Shown here piece after piece: positions 1 to 22,243 of a stretch of 64,000 nt of DNA (positions are counted from its first letter, which is position 1; each line of letters starts with the position of its first letter). The position numbers were made by a program, and so were the translations under genes. The notes under the pieces are model-generated. The model made no database searches and had not been told where the DNA came from. It saw only the letters and a list, made by a program, of their open reading frames with translations. Source of the stretch: Blastocladiella emersonii ATCC 22665 (lineage: Eukaryota; Fungi; Blastocladiomycota); NCBI GenBank assembly GCA_025594325.1, contig JANHCV010000006.1, forward strand, positions 1,488,001 to 1,552,000, in the 5' to 3' direction.

Positions 1-1817
1 TGTCGCGGCTGCCGAGCGAGGACGAGGTGCCGGCCAGCTCACAGCACCTCCCGATCGTCATCAACCACCCCGCCGCCGTAACGCCAGCTCGGCTCGGCGT
101 CGCCTCCGACTCGGGCGGCGTCATCCGCGTGTCGATGGTCAACCTCGGCGACCTCCTGACGCTGCCGCGGGCCGTGCACGCGTCCTTGCTCTCCCTAAAC
201 CACTCGAACGCGGCGGGCGGCATCAGACGCGACGACCATCCAGCGGCAGTCGTCGCGGGCCTGTCATCAACCTCGACCAGCGCGCTGCACCAGCCCAAGC
301 TCAAGGTTTCGGTCGGTGCGTTCGAGGGCGGCACGCGGTACGCGGTCACCACGCTCGGGAAGTCGAGCGGGACCGACGATGACGATCGTCCCTTCTCGCC
401 CTCGTTTTCCGACATGCCGCGCCTGATTCTCGCGGCGACGACGCGGGATGCGGCGGACCGCGAGTCGATCAGCAACGAGGCGCCCGGGATGGAGACGCTG
501 CAGCCGCCGCGCCCGCACTCGCCAGAACTGCATGCAACCGCGGCCTCGGATGGAACGGCGGCCACATCCACGACCAACGAGACGAACTCGATCAGCGATA
601 CCGCGTCGTCTACCAGCACCAACGCCAGTATCCGGACGGGTACGAGCAGCGGCACCGGCAGCGCGGCCAGCAGTCTCGCGGCGCTCGGCGTGAGTGCGCC
701 CGTCATTCCACAGCCGCCGCGGCCGCGCCCCTCGACCGAGTCGGGCGTCCTCCCGCCGCATCGCCCGCTGCACAACACGTGGCGGTACAAGGCGCAGCGG
801 GCCGAGTACGTGGGCGGCGGCAACGTGCGCGATTCGGTGGTGATCACGTCGTCCATATTGCCCGCGCTCGAGCCCATGGGCCTCGACGCGGCGCTGCGTC
901 CCGACGAAGAGCACAGCGCGTCGAGCAGCTCGATGCAGGGCGCGCCGAGCGGGAAGGCAGCAGCAGATGCGGCGCGGCGCCAGTCGCGCGGTACCACTGC
1001 ATCGTCGGCGTCGCGGCGCAGCACGTGGTACCGGAGGCTGCGGCGCGCGCTGCACCGGCTCCGCACCGAGTTCTTTTACCGGTTCCCCGACCCGGCCGAG
1101 GAGGAGCGGTACCTCGCGTACTACTACGCGAAGCTCAAGATACGAATGCAGGTCACGGCGGTGGCGGGGATCCTGACGCAGCTCCTCATCGCCCTGTTCC
1201 TCAAGCTCTCGCGCGCGGGTCGCGATGCGGTCAACGACGCCGAAGCTGACGAGCTGCACCCGCTGGGCGGCGGCATGTTCGCGTGGCTCGAGCCGTTTCG
1301 GCCTATCCTGCTCCAGTGGTGGTTCCCGTACGCGCAGCACATCCTCGCGTACCTCCTGCAGCTCGCGGTCGCACGGTCCCGGTCGGCGTGGTTCACGGGC
1401 GCGAACCTCGAGTGGTACGCGGTGGGCCACTGCATCGTGTTCGTCGCGGGCGTCGTGACCGTAGACATACAGGTCCGCGTCATTACCAGCAACTACGTGC
1501 TGGTGCAGTCGGCGTGCCATCAAGTCCTCGCCACGGTGCTGGGGATCGCTACGCTCAGGCTCCGGCCCCGCGCACACGCGACCGTGCTGGCGGCATTCAT
1601 CCTGCTGGTAGTGGCCGAGTACGCGCTGCTCCTTGCCAACGGCGCGGCCACCGACACGCTAGCCAAGATCGTGATCGCGTCGTCGACGTCGCTCATCAGC
1701 CTCGTGCTCAGCGTCTACTTTGAGCTGGCCAACCGGCGGTACTTTGTGATCAAGTCGCACGTCCAGCGGACGTCGACGTTGCGCCGGCGCCGTGACCCTT
1801 CGTCGGCCTTCCACTGA
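1..1817 (+). CDS. 5'-truncated paralog (copy 1) of the catalytic-domain-less transmembrane adenylyl-cyclase-like protein; linker plus second membrane block
   Basis: Frame open from position 3 to the TGA at 1815-1817. Shares long blocks with the 15112-19055 protein (LLTLPR..HASL, LPPHRPLH, RDSVVITSS.LP.LEPMGLD, FFYRFPDPAEE.RYLAYYYAKLK, QSACHQVLATVLG, SVYFE.ANRRYF). About six hydrophobic segments. Confidence 0.85.
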   Translation, partial: SRLPSEDEVPASSQHLPIVINHPAAVTPARLGVASDSGGVIRVSMVNLGDLLTLPRAVHASLLSLNHSNAAGGIRRDDHPAAVVAGLSSTSTSALHQPKLKVSVGAFEGGTRYAVTTLGKSSGTDDDDRPFSPSFSDMPRLILAATTRDAADRESISNEAPGMETLQPPRPHSPELHATAASDGTAATSTTNETNSISDTASSTSTNASIRTGTSSGTGSAASSLAALGVSAPVIPQPPRPRPSTESGVLPPHRPLHNTWRYKAQRAEYVGGGNVRDSVVITSSILPALEPMGLDAALRPDEEHSASSSSMQGAPSGKAAADAARRQSRGTTASSASRRSTWYRRLRRALHRLRTEFFYRFPDPAEEERYLAYYYAKLKIRMQVTAVAGILTQLLIALFLKLSRAGRDAVNDAEADELHPLGGGMFAWLEPFRPILLQWWFPYAQHILAYLLQLAVARSRSAWFTGANLEWYAVGHCIVFVAGVVTVDIQVRVITSNYVLVQSACHQVLATVLGIATLRLRPRAHATVLAAFILLVVAEYALLLANGAATDTLAKIVIASSTSLISLVLSVYFELANRRYFVIKSHVQRTSTLRRRRDPSSAFH

Positions 1818-2058
1818 TACTACATCCGATTCCATTCACCACCTTCACATTGGCGATATCAATGCGCAGAGTGGCACGGTGCGAAAGTGCCACGTCGCCG
1901 CCAACATCGGGAGCGGAGAGCGGCGTGACCGACAGTCAGCGCGGCGAGAACGACGCGTCACCGCCGCCGCCACGCCGGTCGCCGACCCGCCCGTCTTGCA
2001 CACATCTCTCTCCTTCCTCTCTCCCGCTCAGACAACACCACCCGCACCAAGAAAGCAA

Positions 2059-5000
2059 ATGAACCCGCCGCCCACCGCCGCCGCCGAGCTCGAGCTCGTC
2101 GAGCGCGTCGAGCTGCGCTTCGCGCTGGCGTCGACGGACGCGCAGCTAGCCGCCGCCGTCAACACCTTCCTCGTCCCTCTTCTGCAAAAGCTAGCCTCGC
2201 CCAACGCCGCCGCCGTGCAGCCCAATGTCCTCGCGCTGCTATCGCACATCAACACGCGCCTGCGCGCCGCCGCGAGCGTGACCCTGCCGACGCCCGCCAT
2301 CGTGGCACTGCTCGGCGCGCCCGCGACGCCCGCCGTCGTGCGCAACTTTGCCCTCGTGTACCTCGAGATGGCCATCGACCGCACGCCCGCCGCGGCCGAC
2401 CGCGCCACGCTCGTCCCGTCGCTCCTCGCCGCCGTCGCCTCGTTCGGCCCCACCCCGCTCCCCGTCACGAGCCCCGCGCTCCCGCGCCCGTACCAGCTGC
2501 TCGTCGTCCAGCTCCTCGCGTGCATTCATGCCATGCAGCTGCCGCCCGTCAACTCCGACGCGGTTGCGGTGCGCGACGCTATCGCCGAGAAGGTATCGCA
2601 GGCGCACTGGGAGCACGCGCTTGCGGCCCTGACGGTCGCCCTGGTCGCGCCCGCCGCGCCCATCGATCCCGCCGTCAAGCGCAGCCTGTGCTCGTTCGCC
2701 GTCTTCTACGTCCCCGCCCCGCTCGAGCCCGTCCTGTGGCAGCGCGCGCTGCTCCTGTTCGCCGCCTCGTGTGACGCCCACAACGCCGTCGCCGAGCACG
2801 CCGAGACCGCGTGGCGCAAGGTCAAGATCGACGTCGAGGACCCGCAACTCGTCGACGCCGTCCTCACCATGTACCCGCTCCAGCCGGCGGCACCGCAGCA
2901 GCAGCAGCCGCAGAGCCCCGTCTCGCTGCAGCAGGTGCAATCGCTGACGCAGGGCGCGCTCGCGACCAAGACTAAGGTCCTCGCCTTCGCCCAGAAGTCG
3001 AAGCGCGCCGCGAGCGCGTTCCCGGCGTGCATCAAGATCACCTTCGACGCGCTCTTCGCCACGGCCACGGTCCCGCGCCTGCAGCAGGCCGGGCTCGCGT
3101 ACCTGCAGTGGGTCGCGCGCATGGCCGACCAGTCGCTCCTCGAGCGCATCGCGCCCGTCCTCGTCTCGGGTACCCTGCGCACCGTCAAGGACGAACCGAC
3201 CGGCCCGCTCGCCGAGTACGCTCTGACCGCGCTCGGCCTCCTCCTCAAGCGCGTCCCGCAGCAGCTCACGCCCGATATCCTCGACACGCTGTTCGCGCAG
3301 GCCCGCGCCGGACCACCCGCCCACCTCAAGCTCGCCCTCCAGGACTGCCTCACCGGGATCCTGTTCTCGATGTCCACCCCGCCCGCCAACCTCGAGCTGC
3401 TCACCGCGGGCGCCGCGGGGCACGCGTCGGACCTGTTCCGCTGGGTCGCCCTGCGGTACACGGGCAAGCTCGCCCCACTCGCCCTCCCCACGCTCGCACT
3501 TCACCTCCAGCTCACCGCCGACGCGTCGCACCTCGTCCGCCAGGAGGCCGCGCACGGGCTCGAGCTCGAGGCGCTCGTTGACGCGGCGGCGGCAGCGCCG
3601 TCGTTTGACGAGGTTTTGGGAATGGTCCGCGGGCTCCCCGGTAAGATCCCGCACGCGGTCCGCGAGGCCAGCGTCGAGTTCCTGTTCCGCTACCTCGCCG
3701 TCACCGCGCTCGGCCACCCGGTCCGCCGCTCCGTCGTCCCCGAGTCGCTCCGCGACCACGCGTTCGCGCGCAAGTACCGCGACTGGATCCGCGCCAACAG
3801 CGACGCGGCGGCCGCGTGGACGCGGTTCCTGCTCGATAACCTGTTTCTCAGCGGAGGTGCGTTTCCACCACCTTCTGGGCTTCTCGTCGTCCACGATCTG
3901 ACACCGCGCTCGCAACCACTAGCCCCGTACTCGCTCCAGGGCGCCGCCCTCCGCCGCCTGTCCCCGCTCGCCGACCTTGGCCCCGCGATCCCGCTGCGCG
4001 GCGACGCCGAGACCGCGGCCCTCGCCACCATGCTGTACCAGGCGACCAACCCGGCCGTCATGTGGTCGGTCCGCCGCCTGCTCCCAGCCGCGTTCGACGC
4101 CCCGGGAGCGCACCTCGACGCCAACACGCCCGTGGTCCGCGCCGCCGAGCTCGCGCGCGTGCCCGATGCCGCCGCGTGTCTCGCGGCCCTCGGCCAGGGA
4201 TATGGCCCGCTCGTCGAGACGGTCGCGCTGCTCCAGCTCGAGGCCCTCGCGCGATCCCGGTCGCTCGTCGCGACGGCCGAGACGGTGGACAAGGTCAAGA
4301 CGCTCGTCGCCGCCGCCGGTACGCCGTCGCAGGTCGTGTGCGGCGCTCTCGCCGCGCTCGGGTGGATGGGATATTTTACGGCTGACGACGCGGTGCGCGA
4401 GGCCGCCGTCAAGATCCTCACGGACCACGTGCCCGCATCGAGCAACGCCAAGACGTCGCCCAACGTGCTGCTGAGCGCCGGCGAGGCCGTCGCGGTGCTC
4501 GTCGCCGGGCCCGCGGCAAAGTGTATCCCGTTCGACCAGCACGTCTCGTTCACTGAGTCTACGGCGCCGGCGACAACCCACGCGTCGCCCATCACCGCGG
4601 TCCTCGCCATGGACACGGCCGTGAAACCGACGCGCCGCGCGCAGCTGACGTACCTCGAGTCGCTCGTCACGTCGGTCCCCGCGCTCGACGCCCGCACCGT
4701 CGAGGCCGTCCACGACGTGGCCGTCCGCGCCCTCATCGTCCCCGAGTGGGCCGACCTCGCGTCCCGCTGCCTCATGCAGATCCACCTCGCGTACCTGGCC
4801 GCGTCGCCCGGACTCATGCCCGCCGTCTCCCGCGCGCTCGCGTCCGCTCCGCCTGCGGCATCGTCGGCCCGCGCGTTCGTGCTCTTTGATTGTCTCGTGG
4901 CGGCGGCCCGCGAGGTCGGGAAACCGTCGCTCGCGTGCGACCTGCTCAAGGTGCTCGACGATATGGGGCTCATGGTGGTGCCGGGCGCCGACGGCGGGTC

Positions 5001-7320
5001 GGCGGCCGAGTCTTCCGCTAGCGAGTCGGCGATCGCCGCCGCCGCCGCTGCCGCAGCAGACGACGAGAAGTGGAACGCGCTGCCGGCGACGGACCTCGTT
5101 CCCGTCCTGTTCCGGCTGCAGTGTCACCCGAACACGCACGTCGCGGCGTGCATCAAGTCGCTCGTCTCCGGGCTGGTCTCCACGCCGCGCCCGGCGCTCG
5201 CGACGCACTTCCCGCGCATCTTTCACGCGGTGCACCGCGGGCTGTCGCACTCGGCGCCGCTCGTCCGCGAGACGTCGCTGCTGGCGCTACTCGAGCTGCT
5301 GAAGCTGCGCGACGCCGAGTCGGTCGTCGCGGGGTACCTGTCCGACGACCTGTGCCGCGCCGCGCTCAAGCTGCTCGACGACGTGCACGACGCGATCCAG
5401 GCGGTCGCGGTGCGCACGTGCGGCGTGCTATGCCAGCGCATGGATCCCGCGGTCGTGGTCCCGTTCCTCCTCGACGGGCTGCGCAGTGCGGCCGCGGCGG
5501 TCACGAAATTCGCCCTGTCGACGCTGCTCAAGCTGTGCCAGGACGCGCCCCACGACGCGCTGCTCCCGCAGATCGCGACGATCACGACGGCGCTCCTCGA
5601 CGCGCTTTCGGCGCTCGAGCCGCAGGTCCTCAACTACATCTCGTTCCACGTCCACAAGTACGACATGTCCGCCGACCAGCTCGACGGCCGCCGCCTGCTC
5701 CTGCTCCAGAGCTCGCCCGTCATGGGCACCCTCGAGACGCTGATCGGCCGCGCGACGAAGCCCGCGGACGTCGAGGGCCTCGTCGCCGCGCTCGCCGGTG
5801 TCGTGCGCAAGGGCGTCGGCTTGCCCACGCGCGGCGGAGTCGCCCGTGCGATCCTCCTCCTCCGCTCGCCCGTGCTCGCGTCCGTCCCCGGCGCCGCCGA
5901 TACCCTGCTCAAGGCCCTGTCGGGCGCCGTCTTCGACGCGAACATGACGGTGCGCCACGTCATGGCGGCCGCCGCCGCGCACGTCATTGGCGCCGGCGCG
6001 CAGCAGGTGACGGTGACGAAGTTCATTGCTCACCTCGTCAAGCAGTACCTCACAACGCCCGACCGCCGCGCCGCCGTCGCCGACGTCGCGCTCGCGTGCA
6101 GCAAGTCGCCCGCGAGCAAGGACGTGTTCAACGGCGTGCTGTCCGCGCACCTCCCGCTGACCGCGATCGGAATGCACGCGGCGAAACCGGTCTCGGCAGC
6201 ATCCGCGTCCGCTGACGGGACCGCGAGCAACGCGGCCGCCGCCGAGTCGTCCGGGATCCCCGATGAGGCCGATGAGTGGCGCCGCGTGTGGCAGGCGTAC
6301 GTGAACGTGGACGCGACGGCGACGCGCATGTACGGCGGCGAGATCGCGTCGCTCGCCGCCGAGTGGGTCGCGGGCAGCCAGGACTGGGCGATCCAGGACC
6401 AGGCCGCGCGCACGCTCGCGTGGGTCGCCGCCGACCCGCACCGCGTCCCTGTCCCTGCCGACGCGCTCGCCGCCGTGTTCCACCTCGCCACCATCCAGAA
6501 GCGCGAGGCCCTCGTCACCAGCGTCGCCCGGCTCGCGGCCGCGGCCGCTGCGGTCCCTGACGCGCAGCACACGGCACGCGCGGTCCTCGAGTGGATGCTC
6601 GCCGAGACGATGAAAGCGAACCGCGGGTACGACCTGCTCGCGGACATGATCACCGCCATGGCGCCGCACGGGCTCGCGGACGGGCTCCCCGTCATCGACG
6701 CCGCCGTCAAGGCCGCCCACAAGCTCGTCGACCAGGCCGCGCAGCCGCTGTCGTCGAAACGCCGCGCCGCCGTCACCGCCGCCCTCGAAAGCGCGTGGCA
6801 CTTCCTCGTTGAGGCGTACCGTGCGCTCTCGCGCGGCGCGCGGCCCGCGGCCGTCGCGGACATGCCCGGGTTCCTCGCCGTCTTCGCCGCGCTCAACGCG
6901 CAGCCCGAGGGCGTAACCGGCCCCGCGGCGTCGGCGGCTGCGGTTCGCGACCTCGCCACCGCGATCCCCCTCCTCGCGCGCGCGGGGACTGATCTCACCT
7001 TCGTCCTTGCGGACGTGGCGCGCGTCCCCGCGTGCCTCGAGGTCGCCGCCAACTCGCTCGCACTCCCGCAGCGCGAGTCGGTCGCCGCGCTCGTCGCGCT
7101 CATGTACGTCGCGACGGGGTTGCCGCGCCCGACTGCTGCGGTGGGTCCCGCGTCGCCAACGACGGGTGAGGCGGATGTGAACGCGGCGACGGCGCAGCGT
7201 GTGCGGACCTGGCTCGCGCCCAAGCTTGCGGCGTTCCTCGACAACCCGCGCGCGTGGCTCAGCGGCGACCCGATGCGCGAGGAGGTGGCGCGGCTTGCGG
7301 AGGCGGTGCGCAGCAGGTAG
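2059..7320 (+). CDS. ECM29: Proteasome adapter/scaffold ECM29 (HEAT-repeat protein)
   Basis: N-terminus ELELVERVELRFALASTDAQL...FLVPLLQKLASP...LLSHINTR is typical of Ecm29, as are the later RETSLLALLELL, LSALEPQVLNYISFH and GVGLPTRGG motifs. Probable 66-nt in-frame intron at 3857-3922 (GTGCGT...CTGAC...CTAG). Confidence 0.9.
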   Translation: MNPPPTAAAELELVERVELRFALASTDAQLAAAVNTFLVPLLQKLASPNAAAVQPNVLALLSHINTRLRAAASVTLPTPAIVALLGAPATPAVVRNFALVYLEMAIDRTPAAADRATLVPSLLAAVASFGPTPLPVTSPALPRPYQLLVVQLLACIHAMQLPPVNSDAVAVRDAIAEKVSQAHWEHALAALTVALVAPAAPIDPAVKRSLCSFAVFYVPAPLEPVLWQRALLLFAASCDAHNAVAEHAETAWRKVKIDVEDPQLVDAVLTMYPLQPAAPQQQQPQSPVSLQQVQSLTQGALATKTKVLAFAQKSKRAASAFPACIKITFDALFATATVPRLQQAGLAYLQWVARMADQSLLERIAPVLVSGTLRTVKDEPTGPLAEYALTALGLLLKRVPQQLTPDILDTLFAQARAGPPAHLKLALQDCLTGILFSMSTPPANLELLTAGAAGHASDLFRWVALRYTGKLAPLALPTLALHLQLTADASHLVRQEAAHGLELEALVDAAAAAPSFDEVLGMVRGLPGKIPHAVREASVEFLFRYLAVTALGHPVRRSVVPESLRDHAFARKYRDWIRANSDAAAAWTRFLLDNLFLSGGAFPPPSGLLVVHDLTPRSQPLAPYSLQGAALRRLSPLADLGPAIPLRGDAETAALATMLYQATNPAVMWSVRRLLPAAFDAPGAHLDANTPVVRAAELARVPDAAACLAALGQGYGPLVETVALLQLEALARSRSLVATAETVDKVKTLVAAAGTPSQVVCGALAALGWMGYFTADDAVREAAVKILTDHVPASSNAKTSPNVLLSAGEAVAVLVAGPAAKCIPFDQHVSFTESTAPATTHASPITAVLAMDTAVKPTRRAQLTYLESLVTSVPALDARTVEAVHDVAVRALIVPEWADLASRCLMQIHLAYLAASPGLMPAVSRALASAPPAASSARAFVLFDCLVAAAREVGKPSLACDLLKVLDDMGLMVVPGADGGSAAESSASESAIAAAAAAAADDEKWNALPATDLVPVLFRLQCHPNTHVAACIKSLVSGLVSTPRPALATHFPRIFHAVHRGLSHSAPLVRETSLLALLELLKLRDAESVVAGYLSDDLCRAALKLLDDVHDAIQAVAVRTCGVLCQRMDPAVVVPFLLDGLRSAAAAVTKFALSTLLKLCQDAPHDALLPQIATITTALLDALSALEPQVLNYISFHVHKYDMSADQLDGRRLLLLQSSPVMGTLETLIGRATKPADVEGLVAALAGVVRKGVGLPTRGGVARAILLLRSPVLASVPGAADTLLKALSGAVFDANMTVRHVMAAAAAHVIGAGAQQVTVTKFIAHLVKQYLTTPDRRAAVADVALACSKSPASKDVFNGVLSAHLPLTAIGMHAAKPVSAASASADGTASNAAAAESSGIPDEADEWRRVWQAYVNVDATATRMYGGEIASLAAEWVAGSQDWAIQDQAARTLAWVAADPHRVPVPADALAAVFHLATIQKREALVTSVARLAAAAAAVPDAQHTARAVLEWMLAETMKANRGYDLLADMITAMAPHGLADGLPVIDAAVKAAHKLVDQAAQPLSSKRRAAVTAALESAWHFLVEAYRALSRGARPAAVADMPGFLAVFAALNAQPEGVTGPAASAAAVRDLATAIPLLARAGTDLTFVLADVARVPACLEVAANSLALPQRESVAALVALMYVATGLPRPTAAVGPASPTTGEADVNAATAQRVRTWLAPKLAAFLDNPRAWLSGDPMREEVARLAEAVRSR

Positions 7321-9841: not shown

Positions 9842-11194
9842 TTAACTCGCGACAGCACCCGTCGCCATCGGGTCAAAGTACGTCTCGCCGCGAGTCGACG
9901 GGTTCGCTTGCTGCCGCACGACGACGCGAACAATTTTTTTGAACTGCACCTCGACGAGCGTGTTCACCGCAGTGACGAAGCCGAGAACCATGCCCTGCAT
10001 CACGGGCGTGAAGATCTGACCGCCGACCGCTAGCGCCGCGATGCTCCAGATGAGGAAGTACACGATCGAGTAGAGCAAGAAGGTCGTTCGAACTGAACCG
10101 AGCAGCAGCGTCCGCGACACGTTGCCGCTATCGCCCGAAAGCTGCCCGTTAGCCGTGGCCGTAGCCGACTTAGTTCGAGCGAGCGGCGATGAAGACGAAA
10201 CGAGCTGGCCGGTGGACGCAAGAGTCACCTCTGCATCAGTCAGCGTGCAATGCAAGGAAGCGGGTTGTGTGATTACTGTCTTAGCCGGCGCCTCGTTCGC
10301 AGACGCTCCAGTAGTTTTGCCGCCGCCGAGTCGAGGCTTGGTCATGCCTGAGAGCATGGTGGCGGAACGAGACAACCCGCTTCGAATCGTCCCGCGCAGC
10401 GACGACGAGAACGACGAAGTGCGCGACCCAATACTGTCGTACCCACGCGGGAAGGCGACGCGGTAGCTGTACGCGGTCATCCCGATCCCGCATGTGGGCA
10501 AGATGGTGTTGACCCAGAAGAGCCACGGCGGAACCCGCCAGTTGATCCAGTCATCGCGCGCGTCATAGTCGGCGTGGGTCAAAAGCGTGATCGTGATGTT
10601 GAGCGCCGCGAGCGCCGTTGCGATGATGACGGCTGACGTCCAAATGACGCGGCGCATGCGAGACTTTCGGAAGCAAATGTCGTTGACGCGCGCGGCCATT
10701 GCAATAAAGCAGAGCGAGCCGGCCCACGAGCTGTGAACGATGAATACCACAAAGTACGGCCAGTTCATATCGACGTACGGAAACCGCGGCTGGATGAAGA
10801 CCTGCCAAACATCGCCGGCGCCGTGGACCGTGCTGAGCAAGGCCGTGGCGAGAAGCGTCGCCCAGCGCGGCTCGGTGCATGCTTCGGCCAAGGTAGACGC
10901 GATAGCCCCGATCCTCTTGATTGTCATGCAGCGGCGCTCTGCGCGACGTCGAAAGGAGAGCACCGGGCCGAAGGTGGACATGCGCCGCCGATCGAGAGTG
11001 GAGTCGACCGTGTGCTCTGGATCTGGCCGTGGGGCAGGCTCCGTTGTGACCGCGGATCGTTTGGTCTCCTGCATAAACGAAGCAAATGCATCGCGAGCGC
11101 AGACGGCGAAGGTCAAGAGACTCGCAGCCAGCGTGGCGATGGTGAGGATCTGGTATGCGATGAGTTCATGATTTGGTAGCAAGTAATAGACCAT
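9842..11194 (-). CDS. 7TM GPCR-like receptor, paralog 2
   Basis: Intronless ORF; likely start MVYYLLPNHE at 11194, which aligns with the paralog 1 start. Seven hydrophobic segments with a long Ser/Thr-rich third intracellular loop. Confidence 0.75.
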   Translation of the reverse strand: MVYYLLPNHELIAYQILTIATLAASLLTFAVCARDAFASFMQETKRSAVTTEPAPRPDPEHTVDSTLDRRRMSTFGPVLSFRRRAERRCMTIKRIGAIASTLAEACTEPRWATLLATALLSTVHGAGDVWQVFIQPRFPYVDMNWPYFVVFIVHSSWAGSLCFIAMAARVNDICFRKSRMRRVIWTSAVIIATALAALNITITLLTHADYDARDDWINWRVPPWLFWVNTILPTCGIGMTAYSYRVAFPRGYDSIGSRTSSFSSSLRGTIRSGLSRSATMLSGMTKPRLGGGKTTGASANEAPAKTVITQPASLHCTLTDAEVTLASTGQLVSSSSPLARTKSATATANGQLSGDSGNVSRTLLLGSVRTTFLLYSIVYFLIWSIAALAVGGQIFTPVMQGMVLGFVTAVNTLVEVQFKKIVRVVVRQQANPSTRGETYFDPMATGAVAS

Positions 11195-11296
11195 GGTTGC
11201 ATTGCATAGACTGTGAAGTATAGAGTGAATCTCCAAAGGTGAGAGTAACACCAGTTGTTGAACTGTAATTTCGCGCTCCCACCAGGCCATCGCGCA

Positions 11297-11448: not shown

Positions 11449-12825
11449 CTACAACGCCGCGCCGCCTGTTGCGAGCGGATCAAAGAATGTTTCTCCTCGC
11501 GAAGGTGAGCTAGCCTGCTGCCGGACCACGATTCGCACGATCTTCTTGAACTGCGCTTCGACCACGGTGTTGGTCACGGCGATGAAGCTGAGCACCACGC
11601 CCTGCATCACTGGCGTCAGGAAACCGCCGCCGACGGCCATGGCGCCGACGATCCAGATCACAAAGTAGAGGATCGAGTAGAGAAGAAAGGTCGAGCGGAC
11701 CGAGCCGAGGAGCAGCGTCCGCGACACCTGACTGCCGTCTGCCGACAGCGGCGAGCTGCTCGTCAAGTTGGCCGCCGTGGGCTGGGTGAGCGGCGAGGAC
11801 GACGTGGCGAGCTGGCCGGCAGATGGGTGCGCCTTGGAGTCGGCGAGCGAGCGGAGCGGGCCCTCGAGGTCCTTGGTGATGTTCTGCGGGTACGCGGGAC
11901 GCACAGCGCTGGGTCGCGCGAGCGTCTCGGACCCCGCGGCACTCGCCACCTTGCTCTCGGTCCGGCCGCCGAGTCGTGATTTGGTCATGCCCGAGAGCAT
12001 GGTCGCGGAGCGCGACCACCCGCCACGGAGCGTTCCGCGAAGCGATGAGGAGAACGACGGGGCTCTCGATCCGATGCCGCCGCGGGGAAACGCGACGCGG
12101 TAGCTGTACGCCGTCATGCCGATTCCACACGTTGGAAGAATGGCGTTGAGGTAGAAGAGCCATGGCGGAACGCGCCAGTGAATCCAGTCGTCGCGCGCGT
12201 CAAAGTCGGCGTGCGTAAGCAGCGTGATGGTGACGTTGAGCGCCGCGAGCGCGACTGCAAGAACGACCGCGGAAACCCAGATGACCCGGCGCACGCGAAC
12301 CTTGCGGAAGCAGATCTCGGTGACGCGCGAGGCCATAACGATGAAGCATAGGGATCCGGCCCACGCGCTGTGGCTGATGAATATCGCGAAAAAAGTCATG
12401 TTCATGTTGATAAACGGGAAGCGCGGTTGAACAAACGCTTGCCACACATCGGCAACACCGTGGACCATACTGAGAAGGGCCGTGAGGAGGAGCGTTGCCC
12501 ACCGCGGGTCGCTCAACTCCGTGGCCAGCGTAGATGCGACGGCGGCGACGCGCTTGAGGCTGACGCACCGACGAGTGGAACGTGTTCGGTGCGCCAAGAC
12601 CGGACCAAAAGTCGATAGCCTGCGAGCGTCGATGGCGGGGTTGGGTGCATGCTCTTCCGCCTCCGCTGCCGGCCCTGCGAGTGAAGGACGTTTTCCATCT
12701 TGCACAAGCGAGGCGAACGCATCGCGAACACAGACTGCAAGCGTGACGAGACTCGCGACCAGCGAAGCGATGGTGAGAACTTGATATGCAATATTTTCAT
12801 GGCTAGGTAGTGTGTATCCGCCCAT
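11449..12825 (-). CDS. 7TM GPCR-like receptor, paralog 1
   Basis: 458-aa intronless ORF with a very short N-terminus, seven hydrophobic segments and long first and third loops. Shares DARDDWI.WRVPPWLF, LPTCGIGMTAYSYRVAFPRG and VSRTLLLGSVR.TFLLYSI with paralog 2. Confidence 0.75.
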   Translation of the reverse strand: MGGYTLPSHENIAYQVLTIASLVASLVTLAVCVRDAFASLVQDGKRPSLAGPAAEAEEHAPNPAIDARRLSTFGPVLAHRTRSTRRCVSLKRVAAVASTLATELSDPRWATLLLTALLSMVHGVADVWQAFVQPRFPFINMNMTFFAIFISHSAWAGSLCFIVMASRVTEICFRKVRVRRVIWVSAVVLAVALAALNVTITLLTHADFDARDDWIHWRVPPWLFYLNAILPTCGIGMTAYSYRVAFPRGGIGSRAPSFSSSLRGTLRGGWSRSATMLSGMTKSRLGGRTESKVASAAGSETLARPSAVRPAYPQNITKDLEGPLRSLADSKAHPSAGQLATSSSPLTQPTAANLTSSSPLSADGSQVSRTLLLGSVRSTFLLYSILYFVIWIVGAMAVGGGFLTPVMQGVVLSFIAVTNTVVEAQFKKIVRIVVRQQASSPSRGETFFDPLATGGAAL

Positions 12826-13002
12826 GGCGACGATTGCATCAAGTCAGATTTTCATTCGATGCCGTGAGTGTGTGTTCTCGGTCGTCAATTTCAAGTCAAT
12901 GTACGTATGAATCGCGTCCCACGACCATACCATGTGGTGGGAGGCGTTACCGATCTCTCGGACCGGCGCGTTTCGCCGAACTCTCCAGCGCGCGTGGCCG
13001 CG

Positions 13003-13040
13003 TGTCTCGCACCGCGTCTCACGCGTCGAGCTATCACGTG
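13003..13040. promoter_or_regulatory. Conserved 38-bp promoter box upstream of 7TM paralog 1
   Basis: TGTCTCGCACCGCGTCTCACGCGTCGAGCTATCACGTG; partial copies at about 15026-15075 and 19299-19331. Confidence 0.6.
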
Positions 13041-13105
13041 AGTGTCATCTGACCGCGTTGCGCCTCTTCTTCCCTCAGCGCGCGGAGTCACGGCCAGCAC
13101 CAGCG

Positions 13106-14726
13106 TCATCTATTCGCAGACGGAATAATTCCACGACTCGGAGACGCGCTCTTTTCGACGTGCGACTTGATCTGGAAGTATCGGCGGTTCGCCGACTCAA
13201 AGTAGACGGACAGGACGAGGTTGACGAGGATGGTCGACGTCACAATGACAAGCTTTGAGAGCGTCTCGACTATCGAGCCATGGAAGAGGAGCAGCACAAA
13301 CTCGGCCTGCATCACTAGCACAAACGCACCCAACACGGCAACGTGCGCGCGCGGTCGAAGGCGGAGCGTGGCACCGACGCGAGTACCTGGTGGCACGCCG
13401 ACTGCACCAGCAAAAAGCTATTTAACAGGATGCGGATCTCCATGTCCAGAAAGACGACGGCCGAGACAAAGATCATGGAATGCGCCACCGCGAACTTCTC
13501 AAGGGGTGAGACGGTGAGTAGCGAAGGTGGTCGACGGGAAACGGCACGTACGAGGAGAATCGGGATGGGCGCAGACGACGTCCGAACATAATTTTCGTGG
13601 AACTTGGCCTCGATTGAATCGCTCGAGAAGCGGAGGGTGCGGAACGAGACGAGCCGCGTCGACTTGCTGGTAAAGATGCGGGCGGCTGAACCGAGCGCTG
13701 TGCGAACGAGCACGTTGGGCTCTTCGTCAGTCGGACGATCAGAGTGACCCGAAGGTGCAGGATCGGGAGAAGCTGTCGATATTTTGACTGAAACTTGGTC
13801 GACGGGCTGCAGCGCTGCCGTGGTCGGCGGCTGGATCATGGTTCCGAGGCAGTCATCATGAGAACCCCGTTCGAGATAATCTTGCTGATATCGGCTCACA
13901 TCAATAGGCGCTGATGTTGGCGATGGCTTGACGTTGGCCAAGTCGTCTGAGAGCTCAGTAGGCGCACCGTCCTCGGCGGTGAAGAGCGGCACCTGAGCTT
14001 CCTTGTCCGCATCCTTGGAGCGACCCTCAGTAAGTTTGGCCATGCGCTGAAACGACGAGTTGAGGGCTTGCGACGTGGTCACCAGCATGGTCCGGAAGCG
14101 GTTCGAGCTCGAGTTCGACCCGGTGAACGACGTCCGGGCCGTGTGCCACGAGTCCGAGTCGACGTCGCTGCTGCCGCGTGTGCTACGAGAAGCTGGGCCG
14201 GCGGAAGGCTGTTGTTCGGCAAGCTCATGGTACGAAGTGTCGTTCGAGCCCGACAGTTTCTGAGCGATGCGCGTGTGGAGCGGAAGCGGAAGCGTGCTCG
14301 GCGGTGATTTGGCGCCGCCAGCCGGTCTTCGAACGCCGGAAGCACGCGCCGGATCCCCAACCCGCGCCGCCGAAAGGAAGGCGAGTCGAAGATACTGGGC
14401 CGCGTGCCCGTTGACGAGTCGCTCGTGCCAGTCGGGTACCGGGACTCGGGCCGCGATACGAGCGCGGCCGGATTCGAGGGCGCAGGATCGGTGGCCGCGT
14501 CGACTCCTTTCCTCGGAGGCTGCGCGCTCAACGCGAGGAGGTCGCCCGCGCTCACGGACGTGCCTGCGCGGGCCAGAGAATCGTGGCGGCGAAGCGTGGG
14601 CGCCGAGCTATTCATGTTGTCGGCAGCGGACGCGCCGTCGCGCGCCAGAGCATGGGCGGGTTCGGTCTCGGGCGGCAAGGGACCCGACACCGTCGCGTCG
14701 CCGCAATTATTGCATGGGAGTGACAT
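13106..14726 (-). pseudogene. Pseudogenised tandem copy (copy 3) of the tmAC-like membrane protein gene
   Basis: Colinear with copy 2, but with a 1-nt frameshift near 14351, an internal deletion of about 2.3 kb joining intron 1 (donor 13551) to mid-M2 coding sequence, and a 10-nt frameshifting deletion near 13370. Confidence 0.85.
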
Positions 14727-15111
14727 TGCTTTACATATAGCGTTGCATCATGAGCCCGCAAGGTCCGTTGCGGAGGCGGTGATATGGGCGATGAAGCGAG
14801 TAGTCCACGCGCCGGCGACCTCCCGCAATCTCGGGCCCTGGGAGACAGCCGCCTCGCTGACGTCAAGCCCGGCTGGCGCGCAAGACTCGGACCAGATCAA
14901 GTTCCGTCGAACGGCCACCAGAGCAAGTTCCCTCGGCTGTGCGCGCGTCTCCCGGATCCGCTCGCGTGTGCTCGCGCATTCCCGGGGCAGGGAGACGTTT
15001 CTGGACACGCGCCGCGTTATCACGCCGCGTCACGCGTCGAGATATCATGTGACGCTCACCTGACCGCGTTGCGCCATTTCCTCCCTCACATCACGGAGTC
15101 CAGCACCAGTG

Positions 15112-18100
15112 TCATCTATTCACAAGAGGAAGAAGCCCACGACTTGGAGACGCGTTCTTTTCGACGTGCGACTTGACCTGGAAATACCTTCTGTTCGCGG
15201 ACTCAAAGTACACGCTGAGGACGAGACTCACAAGCGTAGTCGACGCGACAATGAGCAGCTTGGCGAGCACTTCGATCGTCTCGCCGTTCAGAAGAAGAAC
15301 CGCGAACGTGAGCTGCATCAGAAGCACAAACCACGCGAGTACCGTCATGTGCGCGCGCGGGCGGAGCCTTAGCGTTGTGAGCCCGAGCACGGTGGCGAGC
15401 ACCTGGTGGCACGCCGACTGAGCCAGGACAAAATTGCTGGTCATGGCGTTGACCTCCATGTCGAGGATCGTGACGCCCGAGACGAAGACCATCGAATGCG
15501 CGACGGCAAATCGCTCGAGGCTCGCGCCCGTGAACCGCGGAGACCGGGACCGCCCAATCGCGAGTTGCATGCTGTAAAAAGCGAGGTGCTGCGCGTACGG
15601 GAACCACCACTTGAGAAGCATCGGGCGGAACGTCTTGAGCCAAGCGAGAACGCCCAGGTGGAGCGGCCGCATCTCGTCGTCCGACGCGCCATAGGCGGCC
15701 TCGTGCGTGTGCGAGATGAACATGAAGCCGCCGATCAGCAGCTGCGTTGCCATGCCCGCGATCGCGGTGATTTGCATGCGCGTCTTCAACTTGGCGTAGT
15801 AGTACGCGAGGTACCGCTGCTCCTCGGCCGGGTCGGGGAACCGGTAGAAGAACTCGCCGCGCAGCCGGTACAGCATGCGGCGGAGCCGGCGGTACCACGA
15901 GCTGCGCTTGGACGCGAGCCCCGACGCCGTCGTGCTGCGCGACAGTCGCCGCTGGAGCTCCCGCCGCCGCTCCTCCGTGTCGCTCGGGTTCATGGAGCTA
16001 GTGGAAGCGCTGCCGTTCTCGCTGCAGTGCAGCGCGTCGTCGAGGCCCATGGGCTCGAGCGTTGGCAGCATCGACGACGTGATGACGACCGAGTCGCGCG
16101 TGTTGCTGAATGCGCGCGCGGGACGGTCCCGACCCGTCGCGACCTGGTGGCTCCATGCGTCGTGCAGCGGGCGGTGCGGCAGAATGATCGAGTCGGACAT
16201 GGTGCGCGGCTGGTGCACGAGGGCCGGCGCGTGCGGACCGAGGGCGCCGAGGCTGCTGATGGTGCTGCTCTCGGCCGACGGGCTCCGCAGCGCCGCGGGC
16301 GAGGCCGACGCGAGCGAGGCCGACACGAGCGAGTCCATGGTCGACGCTGGCCCGACCGGCCCATCGCTCGATCCGGCCGCCGCCTCGGTCGAATGGCCGT
16401 GCTCGAGTGTGCTGGCCACGACGACGAGCTGCGGCGGCGGTGCGTCGAGCAGGTGCGGAGCCGACGCCTGGACCCGCGCCGCGGTATCGAACAGCCGCAC
16501 TCGCTGGCCGTCGATGTTGCCCTCGCGTGCCCACGTCGACAGCGTCGGCGCCGAAAACCGAGTCACGGCGGGCGAGGGCACGTCGGCGACGTGGAGCCGT
16601 TTCGCGTCGCCCATCTCGTGGACGGCCGGCTGCTGCAGCGAGACGAGCGACGCGTGCATGGTCCGCGGGAGCGTCAGGAGGTGCCCGAAGTCGAGCTGCG
16701 AGACGTGCAGCCCGTTGCTCGACCCCGCCGAGTCGCCAACGTTCTTGCGCGGAGCGAGCGGGCGGTGGTTGAGGACCGTGACAATGCCGTCGTCCTCGCC
16801 CGGGAGCTGCGAGAAGTGGACGGGCGAGGTCGGGGTCGCGGGATCGCCCGCCGAGCTGCCCGCCGTCGAGGTAGGGGAACTGGTCGACGCAGGAAACGTG
16901 AGCACGTTGGTCCCCATGGCGAGACTGGTCGCGACCGAGTATGACGCGAGCGCGGGCCGCGACGACATGGGCGAGAGGAGGAACCCGTGAGCCGGGTCGA
17001 CGAGCACCTGGACCGACTTGGCGGGCCCCGCCGCCGCCGCATTCGAGATCTGGTCGGGCGATGAGGGCGACCTGGCCGGCGTCGACCCGGACGGCGACCG
17101 TGCCTGAGCGCTGAACCCGACGTGCGGAAGGACCGCGTGCGTCGCCGCGGCGCGGAGCTGTGCGTGGGTGGCCGCGGCCTGGCGCACGTTGTGGTAGAAG
17201 GTCGCGCGGGACAGCAGCTCGCGCTGGTACAGGCCGACGAGCGACTTGACGGCGTCGTCAGCGAGGTTGAAGACGAGCAGCCAGATCCAGGACGCGGAGC
17301 TCGAGTCCACGAGCGACCCGAAGAGGAGGACCAGCGCCACGACGAGGAAGGCGCCGCGGAGCGCGGTCCGGAACGCGAGCGTCGAGGCCGCGAGCAGGAC
17401 GTACGTAGAGACGCTGATTTCGGTAGCCCAGATGTGGACCAGCGTGTCGACGCTCGCAGCGGTTGGTGAGCTCGAGCACGTTGCCGAGAACGAGTACTTG
17501 CGGCGGAACAGCGGAGTCCCGTCGATGGCATGGCAGTGGCCAGGGCAGACCAGAGCGAGGAGCTCGGCGAGGAAGCAGGATACCGCGATACCGATGAAGG
17601 CAAAGCGGCGCGACCGCGGCCGCTCGAGTCGCTTCGTGAGCGCCAGCCCGATCGTGACCAGCGTGACGACAGAGATCAGGATGTAGAAGAGAGTCGCGGT
17701 CGCCATGCACTCGTGACAGTGGCCGCGGATCGCGCCCGAGCACTCGGCCAGCACGTCGCGGTACTTGATCGCGGTGTACGCGGACATGCCGGCGCGCGAG
17801 GCGATGTGTGGAAACAGGCCAATCTACGAGGCGTACTAGTGAGTTTTCTGACACGATAGTGATGGTGGCGAGCAAGCGGTACCAGCAAGATCATGAGGAT
17901 GGGCGCCGACGAAGTGCGCACGTAGTGCTCGTAGAACTTGGCCTCAATCGAGTCACTCGTGAACCGCAGCGTGCGGAACGAGACGAGGCGCGTCGACCTG
18001 CTGGTGAAGATGCGCGCGGCCGAGCCGAGGGCGGTGCGGACGAGCACGTTGCGCTCGTCGTCGTCGCTGTTGTGATCCGGCCGAGCAGTTGAGGTCGGTG

Positions 18101-19055
18101 GTTCTGGCGGCGCGGTGGGCGCAAGCGGCACCGATTTCGACGGCGGCTCGACTGCCAGCGGTTGCTCGTGCGACGGCGGCTCGGCCATTGTCCCGAGACA
18201 CTCCTCGTCCTCCTCGACGCCCCCGCGCTCGAGGTACTCTTGCTGGTACCGCTCGACGTCAGCGACCGCGGTGTTGGGTGACTCGGCCTTGACGAAATCG
18301 TCCGAGATCTTGGTCGCCGCGCCGTCCGCATTCACAAGCGGCGTCTGCGCCTCCTTGTCCGACTCGCGCGACCGGCCCTCGGCGAGCTCGGCGACCTTCT
18401 GCAGCGACGACGTGAGGAGCTGGGACGTGGTGGCGAGCATCGTGCGGAACCTGCTCGCCGTCGACCCGGTCTGCGACGTGCGCGCCGTGTGCCACGAGTC
18501 GGACTGCGCGGCGCTGCTGTCGCGCGTGCTGCGCGACCCGGGACTCGCTGACGCCGACGACGATGACGCGAGCGGGTCCGCGAGCTCGTGGTACGACGAC
18601 TCCGCCGAGCCAGTCAGCGTCTGCACCAGCCGCGTGTGCATCGGCAGCGTGCTCTGCGGCGACCTCGCGCCCGGCGTTCGCGGAGTGCGTGTCGCGCGGG
18701 CAGGCGTGCCGAAGCCGCGGCGCCGGAAAGACGGCGAGTCGAAGACGCTCGGCCGTGTGCCGGTCGACACGTCGCTGGTGCCGGTCGGGTACCGCGGCCC
18801 GGTCGTGGTTGGGGTGGTGGATGATGGCGGGCTCGTGGCCCCGTCGGCTCGCTCGGGCGGCGGCGACGCGATGTCGCCCGTGCTCACGGACGCCCCGGCG
18901 CGGGTCAGCGATGCATGGTGCGGGCTGGGATCCGCGCGGCGCAGCATGGGCGCCGAGCTGTTCATCATGTTGTTGTTGTTGGTAGGCGTGACGGGGGCCG
19001 ATGGTGCGGCGGCGGATGGCCCCGCGGCCTCATTGCGTGAAGTTGCGAGCGGCAT
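15112..19055 (-). CDS. Intact approx. 1294-aa protein (copy 2) with two ~6TM blocks resembling M1 and M2 of transmembrane adenylyl cyclases and no cyclase domain
   Basis: Exon 1 19055..17883, 59-nt GT-AG intron 17882..17824, exon 2 17823..15112 in frame. Motifs RFTSDSIEAKFYEHY ... ELLSRATF (M1) and RFPDPAEEQRYLAYY ... ESANRRYF (M2). Confidence 0.8.
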
Positions 19056-19490: not shown

Positions 19491-21909
19491 CTACGCAAAG
19501 TTGTTAACAATGACCGACTCACCAGTCCGCTGCGCGAGCTGGCCGATAGTAATGACCTCGGGGAGGAGCTCGCGGACGGCGGCCACCTTGTCGGGGGACA
19601 CGACGAGGATCATGCCGATGCCGCAGTTGAAGGTGCGGAGCATCTCGGGGCCGGCAATGTTGCCCGTCTCGCGGAGCCACTGGAACACGGGCGGGAGCGT
19701 CCACGCCGACCCGTCGATGACGGCGGCGAGGTGCTTGGGGAGCACGCGCGGGATGTTCTCGGGGAACCCGCCGCCCGTGATGTGCGACATGCCCTTGATG
19801 AGGCCGGCGCGGACGACGGGCAGCAGCGGCTTGACGTACAGGCGGGTCGGGACGAGCAGGGCGTGGCCGAGCGTGGGCGCGGGCGGGTTGGTGGCGAAGG
19901 GGCACGGCGAGTCGAAGTCGAGCCCGGCGAGCTTGACGACGTGGCGGACGAGCGAGTACCCGTTGCTGTGGACGCCCGACGAGGTCAGGCCGAGCAGCAC
20001 GTCGCCGGCGGCCATGTCGTCGAGGCGCGGGAGGACCTGCGAGCGGGGCACGGCGCCGACCGTGAACCCGGCGACATCATAGTCGCCGTGCGAGTACATG
20101 CCGGGCATCTCGGCCGTCTCGCCGCCGACGAGCGCGCACCCGGACTCGGCGCACCCGCGCGCCACGCCCTTGATCACGTCCGCGGCCACGTTCACGTCGA
20201 GCTTGCCGCACGCGTAGTAGTCGAGGAACAGCAGCGGCTCGGCGCCCTGCACGATCAGGTCGTTGACGTTCATGGCGACCAGGTCGATGCCGATCGTGTC
20301 GTGGATCCCCGTCGACAGCGCGATCTTGAGCTTGGTGCCCACACCGTCCGTCGCCGACACGAGCAGCGTGTCCTTGGCGTCGTAGCCGGCGGCCGCCAGG
20401 TCAAACAGACCGCCGAACCCGCCGATATCCGCGTCACTGCCGGGCCGGCGCGTCGCCTTGACGAGCGGCTTGATCTGCTCGACCAGCGCGTTGCCGTTGT
20501 CGATCGAGACACCGGCGTCGGCGTACGACGCGCCCTGCTTGGGCGCGGCGGCGCGACGCAGCGCGCGGTGGGCAATGTCGGTGCGGAAGTGCATATCCTG
20601 GAACTTGACCTGCTTGAGCCCGTCGTAGGCGCGCGACACGGCCGAGGCGAGCGCCGAGTCGACGGCGGTGACGGCGAGGACGCGGCCGCCGCTCGTCACG
20701 TACCCGGTACCCTGGGCGGCGGTGCCGGCGTGGAACACGGTGACGCCGGCGGGGACACTCCCAATAGAAATGGCGTGGCCCTTGGCGTAGTTGCCCGGGT
20801 AGCCGCCCGAGGCGGCGATGACGGTGCACGCGGCGGCCGACGAGAAGTCGACCTTGACGGCGTCGAGGCAGCCGCGGGTGCAGGCGAGCATGACGTGGGC
20901 GAGGTCCGACTCGAGGAGCGGCAGGAGGACCTGGGTCTCGGGGTCGCCGAACCGCACGTTGAACTCGAGCGTCTTGACGTCGCCGCGCGGCGTGACCATG
21001 AGGCCGGCGTACAGGATGCCGACGAACGGGTGGCCCTCGCGGCGGATCCCGTCGACGGTGCGCTGCAGGACCTGCGAGTGGATGGCGTTGAGGACGGCCG
21101 GGGTGGCGACGGGGGCCGGGGCGTAGGCGCCCATACCGCCCGTGTTGAGCCCCTGGTCGCCGTCGAGCGCGCGCTTGTGGTCCTGCGCGGGCGGCATGGC
21201 CACGACCGTGTGGCCGTCCGAGAAGGCGAGCACCGACACCTCCTCGCCCTCGAGGAACTCCTCGACGACGACCTGGTTTGCCGCGTCGCCGAAGGCGCGG
21301 TCGACCATCATCTCCTTGAGCCCGGCGAGCGCCTCGTCCGTCGTGGTCGGTAGCAGCACGCCCTTGCCGGCGGCGAGCCCCGACGCCTTGATCACGACGC
21401 GGTGGCTGACGCTGCGCACGTACGCGACGGCCTGGTCGTAGTCGGTGAAGGTGCGGTACTCGGCCGTCGGGACGTGGTGGCGCGCCATGAAGTCCTTGGA
21501 GAAGGCCTTGGAGCCCTCGAGCTGCGCCGCGTACGCCGACGGGCCGAAGCACGGGATGCCAGCCGCGCGGAACTTGTCGGCGATGCCGGCGACGAGCGGG
21601 ACCTCGGGGCCCGGGACGGCCAGGCCGACGCCGTTGGACGCGGCGAACGACACGAGAGCGTCGAGGTCCGTCTCCTTGATGGCCACGTTCGACACCTTGG
21701 CGAGGCCCGACGCGGTGCCGCCGTTTCCTACGCGATTGAATTGGGGGATGGTTGGCGACTGCGAGAAGCGAAACCGCGGCGCGACAAGAAGGCCTACCTG
21801 GCGCAACGTAGACGTGGGCGACCGAGGCCGACTGGGCGAGCTTCCACGCGAGGGCGTGCTCGCGGCCGCCCGAGCCGATGAGGAGGACGTTGAAGGGGGC
21901 GGCGGACAT
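19491..21909 (-). CDS. ADE5,7: Bifunctional GAR synthetase / AIR synthetase
   Basis: [17 protein letters not shown] start, 70-nt intron 21797..21728, GARS motifs ([27 protein letters not shown]) and AIRS motifs ([35 protein letters not shown]). Confidence 0.97.
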
Positions 21910-22243
21910 GGTGGTGGTTGATACGTGGGTGCCGGGGACGGCGAGGCGGGAGGAGAGCGAGAGTGAGGTGCAAGGAGAGCCGGCCTTTTGACGAGGGAGA
22001 TCAGAGCCGGGTGCATGGCGCGAGACGCGGAGCGGACCGCGTCGCGTCGGAGCGATACGATCCGGCGACCCGGCTTTTCCCGCCGCGTGGCGCACCCGGT
22101 TCCGAGCGTGGCGCCCCACGTGCACGACGCGTCTCACGCTGTCTCGCACTGCGCCACGCGCCGCGTTTCTCGTCCCGCTCTGGCCGCGCACGCGAATTTT
22201 TAGTCTTCGCACCCGATGCACTGCCACCACCACCTTTATCGCC

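Follow-up and report, generated by a model that had tools for sequence, protein, structure and literature searches.

Can the membrane part of a transmembrane adenylyl cyclase (tmAC) be kept as a protein of its own, with no cyclase attached to it? This question is raised by a gene of the blastoclad Blastocladiella emersonii ATCC 22665 that lies on the minus strand of contig JANHCV010000006.1, within a stretch of 64,000 nucleotides to which we refer as the window. The spliced product of its two exons has 1294 aa. A disordered N-tail is followed by six transmembrane (TM) helices, a disordered linker (about 400 aa) and a second set of six helices, and the protein closes with a tail of 32 aa. The twelve helices, in two groups of six, were recognised both by hydropathy and in an AlphaFold2 (AF2) model. 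An earlier note on this DNA had described the same one-intron layout, with a Ser-Pro-Ala linker between two six-helix blocks and a short tail, and our analysis confirmed it; 22 aa follow the last motif. Both blocks are framed by paired motifs, all four of which were found where the note had placed them: RFTSDSIEAKFYEHY and YQRELLSRATF before and after block 1, RFPDPAEEQRYLAYY and YFESANRRYF before and after block 2. In animal tmACs each membrane half is preceded by F-x-S/D-x-x-L-E-x-x-Y and followed by E-x3-R-x2-F. We give a probability of roughly 0.6 to the reading that its product is the 12-helix membrane module of tmACs in a form without cyclase.

The gene belongs to a family. A profile built from four paralog pieces was used in an exhaustive HMMER search of 1.84 billion representative proteins (E ≤ 0.001), which yielded 17 proteins, all from Blastocladiomycota: nine gene models of B. 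emersonii, seven of Catenaria anguillulae and one protein of Allomyces javanicus (P0011). Together with a pseudogene in the window, the nine B. emersonii models bear out the multigene family that had been proposed from the sequence. Both blocks are present in the same order in most relatives, and a few models contain block 1 only or block 2 only. Three paralogs, P0001, P0002 and P0004, cluster with the gene of interest within about 80 kb. The public protein for the gene itself, H9P43_005816 (P0003, 1781 aa), is also among the 17.

Some members of the family deviate from the common layout. P0005 (H9P43_002691, 2504 aa), which lies on another contig, has the full unit of block 1, linker and block 2 twice in tandem, with block 1 at residues 395–701 and 1460–1760 and block 2 at 1240–1509 and 2233–2503; it is either a natural fusion with 24 TM helices or two tandem genes merged by annotation. 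The short models with one block are P0007 and P0008 (H9P43_005695 and 005694) and the Catenaria models P0009/P0013 and P0014/P0016, the halves of each Catenaria pair being adjacent gene models. These one-block models may be stand-alone six-helix proteins or split annotations.

The domains that define a tmAC are the class III catalytic domains C1 and C2. We searched for them and found them to be absent. Pfam scans of the window's own gene pieces gave no match at E ≤ 1, and at E ≤ 10 there was no match for P0001 or P0002, nor for either block when scanned singly. The other 15 relatives had neither PF00211 nor any other domain at E ≤ 0.01. PF00211 was therefore absent from each of the 17 relatives, among them the proteins of Allomyces and Catenaria and H9P43_005816, whose model reads through the stop codon. 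The claim that no cyclase follows either block thus held for the gene pieces, the paralogs, the single blocks and the relatives outside B. emersonii. The earlier note had named two findings that would refute its reading, a placement of the TM blocks in another family and a cyclase-encoding exon past the stop; both were looked for, and neither turned up. No PF00211 gene was found within 10 kb of three family loci. We also considered whether the linker could be a decayed cyclase domain and rejected this, since the linker is disordered, poorly conserved and without PF00211 signal.

The TM regions of tmACs cannot be aligned by sequence, the nine mammalian isoforms showing no conservation of either TM1 or TM2 and TM1 being unlike TM2 within an isoform (PMC9552081), and we therefore tested the fold instead. 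An AF2 model of residues 335–1283 was calculated without templates from a 10-sequence family alignment. In this model both TM blocks had mostly a predicted local distance difference test score (pLDDT) of 75–95, and the linker was disordered (model residues 294–672). The predicted N-terminus, the insert between the bundles and the C-terminus are all cytosolic, as they are in tmACs, and six Cys residues lie on loops opposite the disordered arms. When the model was compared with the PDB by Foldseek, human AC5 and AC9 were found at ranks 1, 2, 4, 5 and 6, with a probability of up to 0.96. Because both blocks superimpose jointly, the model predicts that the two bundles are packed in the manner of M1 and M2 in the solved AC9, AC5 and AC8. 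Shape matches in AFDB and the ESM Atlas included AC1, AC9, Dictyostelium ACA and 6TM anchors, both of bacterial cyclases and of GGDEF proteins. Language-model feature matches for the two blocks included AC_N clusters (0.93 and 0.89), which we take as leads only. At the level of the predicted fold, these results support the earlier description of the protein as a stand-alone tmAC membrane module. The homology to tmACs that they suggest is one of fold, together with short motifs.

Taken singly, each block has the six-helix anchor fold of the bacterial Rv1625c/MASE type. This is a generic fold, found also on a protist kinase, on phosphodiesterases of Plasmodium and Allomyces, and on ImcA. An uncharacterised protein of 990 aa, L0AZH5, aligned over both halves of the model with a Foldseek probability of 0.99; this match may point to two-block proteins without cyclase domains elsewhere among eukaryotes.

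The distribution of conservation within the family was examined in 12 block-1 and 16 block-2 sequences from the three genera. The most conserved positions were those of the four flanking motifs, in which the Glu and the aromatic residues ahead of the TM helices and the E, R and F behind them are invariant. In RFTSDSIEAKFYEHY none of the 12 family sequences departs from the Glu, and Leu, Phe, Lys and Arg reach a conservation of at least 90%; in YQRELLSRATF the Q, both R and the F are invariant throughout the family. The juxtamembrane helices were also the best conserved segments and the linker the least conserved. Identity among the three closest paralogs was 96% in the post-TM6 helix, 83% in the pre-TM1 helix, 80% in the pre-TM7 helix and 76% in the post-TM12 helix (49%, 38%, 43% and 49% family-wide), compared with 61–69% in the TM bundles (31–34% family-wide) and 43% in the linker (23%). 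According to the AF2 model, TM6 continues into the cytosol as a helix of about 30 residues and TM12 as one of about 20. Conservation extends to the opposite face of the membrane: block 1 has six extracellular Cys residues (C419, C427, C430, C484, C488 and C507) where helices TM1–TM4 reach the outer side, all invariant or nearly so, and block 2 has a conserved WWxPY extracellular loop in addition to a conserved TTLRLRPR cytosolic loop. In tmACs a short invariant region precedes TM1 (PMC9552081). The sequence AVLP, which resembles the centre of the cyclase-transducer element (SxL/MP, PMC9552081), occurred in the three closest paralogs only. Within the linker, a motif of the form hydrophobic-x-x-L-x-TLPR, followed by a Ser-rich stretch, is common to distant members of the family and is a candidate docking or phosphorylation site.

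The protein is not a tmAC; it shares the tmAC membrane architecture at the level of the fold. Like ADCY1–9 (solved as AC9 6r3q/9u3s, AC5 8sl3/8sl4 and AC8 8buz), it has a cytosolic N-tail, six TM helices, a long cytosolic insert and six TM helices, with pre- and post-TM helices around each bundle. Unlike them, it has neither C1 nor C2, its helical domains look like stubs, with no convincing cyclase-transducer element, and its family adds a cluster of conserved Cys residues on the extracellular side and disordered cytosolic arms of great length. The bacterial anchors (Mycobacterium tuberculosis Rv1625c/Cya, 7yzk; Pseudomonas aeruginosa ImcA, 8wcn; MASE-type) are single dimerising 6TM units that always carry an output domain, whereas the B. 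emersonii protein fuses two units in one chain, with no output domain and no Pfam MASE match. The 6TM N-terminal regions of Plasmodium falciparum PDE-alpha (Q8I5V4) and of an Allomyces protein (A0A0L0SI35) matched one block with Foldseek probabilities of 0.99–1.00. These phosphodiesterases have one 6TM unit followed by a phosphodiesterase catalytic domain, and no relation to them was detected at the sequence level; they show that the 6TM module has been re-used with different outputs in eukaryotes, Blastocladiomycota included. The earlier note had set the protein against the Cyr1 cyclase of dikaryan fungi. This framing does not apply to a blastoclad. B. emersonii carries 17 genes with cyclase domains; their architecture varies, and they include two-domain, multi-TM adenylyl cyclases whose levels rise in zoospore formation (PMC9730499). 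The survey in the genome paper was restricted to genes bearing PF00211, and no description of cyclase-less proteins of the tmAC type was found in our literature searches.

What could a membrane module do without its cyclase? A receptor, a scaffold and a dominant-negative partner had been proposed. We favour an autonomous receptor or transducer because the strongest constraint falls on the four cytosolic juxtamembrane helices and because the outer face looks disulfide-stabilised. In real cyclases the juxtamembrane helices transmit the membrane domain's state to the catalytic dimer. In the B. emersonii protein the module would by itself act as a receptor or transducer at the membrane. The most plausible ligands are lipids and small extracellular molecules; such a ligand would be sensed by the helical bundle and by the outer face, presumably disulfide-stabilised, with the six conserved Cys of block 1 and the WWxPY loop of block 2. 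The signal would be relayed through the extensions of TM6 and TM12 and the helices ahead of TM1 and TM7, and the output would go not to a catalytic dimer but to partners recruited by the juxtamembrane helices and by short motifs of the disordered N-tail and linker. Such a module would most parsimoniously have originated from a two-domain cyclase with 12 TM helices, as found in B. emersonii, by loss of both catalytic domains (the "decapitated" cyclase of the earlier note), followed by tandem duplication within Blastocladiomycota. We put forward only tentatively the full proposal, namely that the family is a multigene set of autonomous signalling receptors without cyclase whose output passes through the juxtamembrane helices and the disordered arms, and would give it somewhat less than even odds.

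Several points weigh against these interpretations. No sequence-level similarity was found to any tmAC, to Pfam AC_N (PF16214) or to MASE families, and the exhaustive HMMER search returned no cyclase-bearing relative. Sequence searches of the PDB with the whole protein and with block profiles gave chance matches only; a homolog search with the block-1 profile at E ≤ 10 found nothing, and one with block 2 of P0001 found the known paralogs only. A null result of sequence methods is expected, because TM1 and TM2 of tmACs are unconserved even among mammalian isoforms (PMC9552081). The structure was predicted from an alignment of 10 sequences, and the packing between the blocks is part of that prediction. 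The flanking motifs are only putative equivalents of those of tmACs. The receptor or transducer function is entirely inferred, expression is presumed, and the 3' end is that of the predicted gene model.

Among the other explanations, the one that survives best has the same fold arise from a different origin. A 6TM sensor module, of the sort borne by cyclases, GGDEF domains, phosphodiesterases and kinases, would have been duplicated in tandem and fused; never having had catalytic domains, the family would have converged on the tmAC architecture. A resemblance between blocks 1 and 2 can still be detected (hhalign E 2.4e-4, probability 44%), with TM5–TM6 aligned on TM11–TM12 and the E, R and F of YQRELLSRATF placed onto the E, R and F of YFESANRRYF. 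No such similarity exists between TM1 and TM2 of mammalian tmACs (PMC9552081), and the difference could mean a younger duplication. The existence of P0007 and P0008, which have block 2 only, would fit such a history, as would the matches of single blocks to ImcA, to the 6TM regions of Plasmodium and Allomyces phosphodiesterases and to a protist kinase anchor, and the lack of any sequence link to a cyclase. However, the short gene models may be annotation fragments, and the order of domains equals that of tmACs position for position. To our knowledge, two bundles packed in this way in a single chain occur only in 12-TM cyclases, and B. emersonii itself has such cyclases (PMC9730499). We regard an independent origin as the less likely of the two, although the residual similarity of the blocks hints at it.

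The module could also be a regulator of genuine membrane cyclases, forming hetero-oligomers with them through its TM bundles or juxtamembrane helices and either titrating them, as a dominant-negative partner, or targeting them. The TM clusters of tmACs mediate assembly and oligomerisation. The predicted TM fold equals that of tmACs, AC5 has been solved as a dimer (8sl4), and B. emersonii has multi-TM two-domain cyclases that rise during zoospore formation (PMC9730499). Against this, the protein has no sequence similarity to cyclase TM domains, whereas TM1 and TM2 of tmACs pair in a highly isoform-specific manner (PMC9552081). Simple titration would call for neither the conserved Cys cluster nor the long disordered arms with their motifs, and none of the three loci that we inspected has a PF00211 gene within 10 kb. 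We consider such a role unlikely.

It is still less likely that the protein is one part of a split enzyme, a membrane subunit on whose juxtamembrane helices catalytic domains encoded elsewhere, of a cyclase or of another kind, would dock. The strong conservation of those helices and the variety of the 17 cyclase-domain genes (PMC9730499) would suit this arrangement, but no candidate partner was identified and no cyclase gene is adjacent at the three family loci. That the protein is a transporter or channel with 12 TM helices and no relation to cyclase anchors is highly improbable: the arrangement of 12 TM helices in two sixes is compatible with it and some MFS and SLC35 entries appeared in the AFDB Foldseek lists, but neither a transporter fold nor a Pfam transporter domain was found.

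The remaining alternative concerns the gene model. H9P43_005816 has the same start and intron as our gene and is 99–100% identical to it over residues 1–1283; the translation of exon 1 is 99% identical to its residues 1–397 and can also be aligned to P0001 and P0002. The public model departs from the open reading frame (ORF) at GT 15151, 37 nt ahead of the stop, and adds about 500 residues (window 11539–15151), composed of fragments of the decayed paralog and of the 3' half of the 7TM-like gene at 11449..12825 (Table 1). From its sequence, this extension looks like an annotation chimera, because no Pfam domain is gained, because its 7TM part begins within a TM helix, because an intron of about 965 nt is required at the first added junction as against 59 nt for the real intron, and because P0001, P0002, P0004 and the Allomyces relative P0011 end 9–36 residues beyond the motif equivalent to YFESANRRYF. 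Apart from the skipped stop of the public annotation, little speaks for an mRNA that runs past the stop or for missed catalytic exons, and the nature of the added residues, the oversized intron, the early stops of the relatives and the lack of a PF00211 gene within 10 kb make such an artefact the least probable of the explanations. The public model probably needs correction.

As had been noted, other genes follow the stop in both copies that can be checked: the decayed paralog and the two 7TM-like genes follow the gene of interest, and an ECM29-like gene follows P0004. The pieces of the decayed paralog detected by tblastn match aa 29–116, 116–391, 1155–1203 and 1208–1294 of the intact gene, so that the decayed copy lacks the linker, most of block 1 and half of block 2; its reading frame shifts near 14355. 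The portion of P0004 within the window gave a 100% tblastn match to P0004 residues 316–919. The ECM29-like and GARS-AIRS genes are flanking housekeeping genes. The two 7TM-like genes had no Pfam match, and an AF2 model of the 7TM neighbour was unusable (pLDDT 38); ESM feature leads pointed to the THH1/TOM1/TOM3, DUF7703 and STE2-like 7TM families. The second of the pair has only 208 aa in the public annotation. A conserved cassette of a 7TM gene and the cyclase-less module was considered and rejected, as no 7TM homolog was present in the ±10-kb loci around P0001 and P0002/P0004.

Table 1. Positions of the gene, its parts and its neighbours in the 64,000-nt window
Feature	Position	Strand	Description
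Exon 1	17883..19055	-	ATG at 19055; disordered Ser/Thr/Pro-rich N-tail of ~335 aa, pre-TM1 helix, first half of TM1
Intron	17824..17882	-	59 nt, GT..AG, within TM1; exons join in frame
Exon 2	15112..17823	-	Remainder of block 1, linker, block 2, tail; TGA stop at 15114..15112
Pre-TM1 juxtamembrane motif RFTSDSIEAKFYEHY (aa 364-378)	17922..17966	-	Helix H34-47 in the AF2 model
Membrane block 1, TM1-TM6 (aa 380-589, split by the intron)	17230..17918	-	Hydropathy; AF2 helices with pLDDT 75-95; predicted to align to M1 of AC9/AC5/AC8
Post-TM6 exit motif YQRELLSRATF (aa 590-600)	17197..17229	-	Begins a cytosolic helix of ~30 residues
Disordered cytosolic linker (aa 625-1030, ~400 aa)	15907..17124	-	pLDDT ~30, without secondary structure; short conserved islands
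Linker island HVSQLDFGHLLTLPR	16642..16713	-	LxTLPR island; recurs in the linkers of P0005, P0006, P0010 and P0011
Pre-TM7 juxtamembrane motif RFPDPAEEQRYLAYY (aa 1052-1066)	15799..15843	-	Y, F, P and E invariant in 16 sequences
Membrane block 2, TM7-TM12 (aa 1070-1262)	15211..15789	-	AF2 helices with pLDDT 77-94; predicted to align to M2 of AC9/AC5/AC8
Post-TM12 exit motif YFESANRRYF (aa 1263-1272)	15181..15210	-	E and R invariant
C-terminal tail	15112..15180	-	22 aa past YFESANRRYF and the stop codon; no further domain
Decayed paralog	13106..14726	-	Next to the gene on its downstream side; the N-tail and the beginning of block 1 are fused to the end of block 2
Two tandem 7TM-like membrane-protein genes	9842-11290, 11449-12825	-	62% identical; long third cytosolic loop
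Second intact paralog, P0004, C-terminal two-thirds	3..1817	+	Cut by the window start; ORF 27..1817
ECM29-like HEAT-repeat gene	1792-7320	+	~1730-1840 aa; after the partial P0004 copy
GARS-AIRS bifunctional purine-synthesis gene (ADE5,7 type)	19491-22016	-	Pfam GARS_N/A/C, AIRS

If the family does consist of autonomous receptors without cyclase, it would provide the first case in nature of a tmAC membrane domain that stands alone, and a direct handle on what the membrane domains of tmACs sense. These domains have been proposed to be lipid receptors (PMC11606603, PMC12414865), a recent suggestion (PMC11606603) in a field where the function of the membrane domains, which account for about 35% of the tmAC coding sequence, is still debated although the first sequence dates back more than three decades (PMC12414865, PMC9552081). 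A natural family that keeps the 12-helix module and its juxtamembrane helices without catalysis argues for a selectable function of the module itself. In B. emersonii the behaviour of the zoospore depends on cyclic-nucleotide signalling (PMC9730499). The family would also offer a simple experimental system, in which ligand binding, partner recruitment and chimeras with cyclases could be tested without interference from a cyclic AMP read-out.

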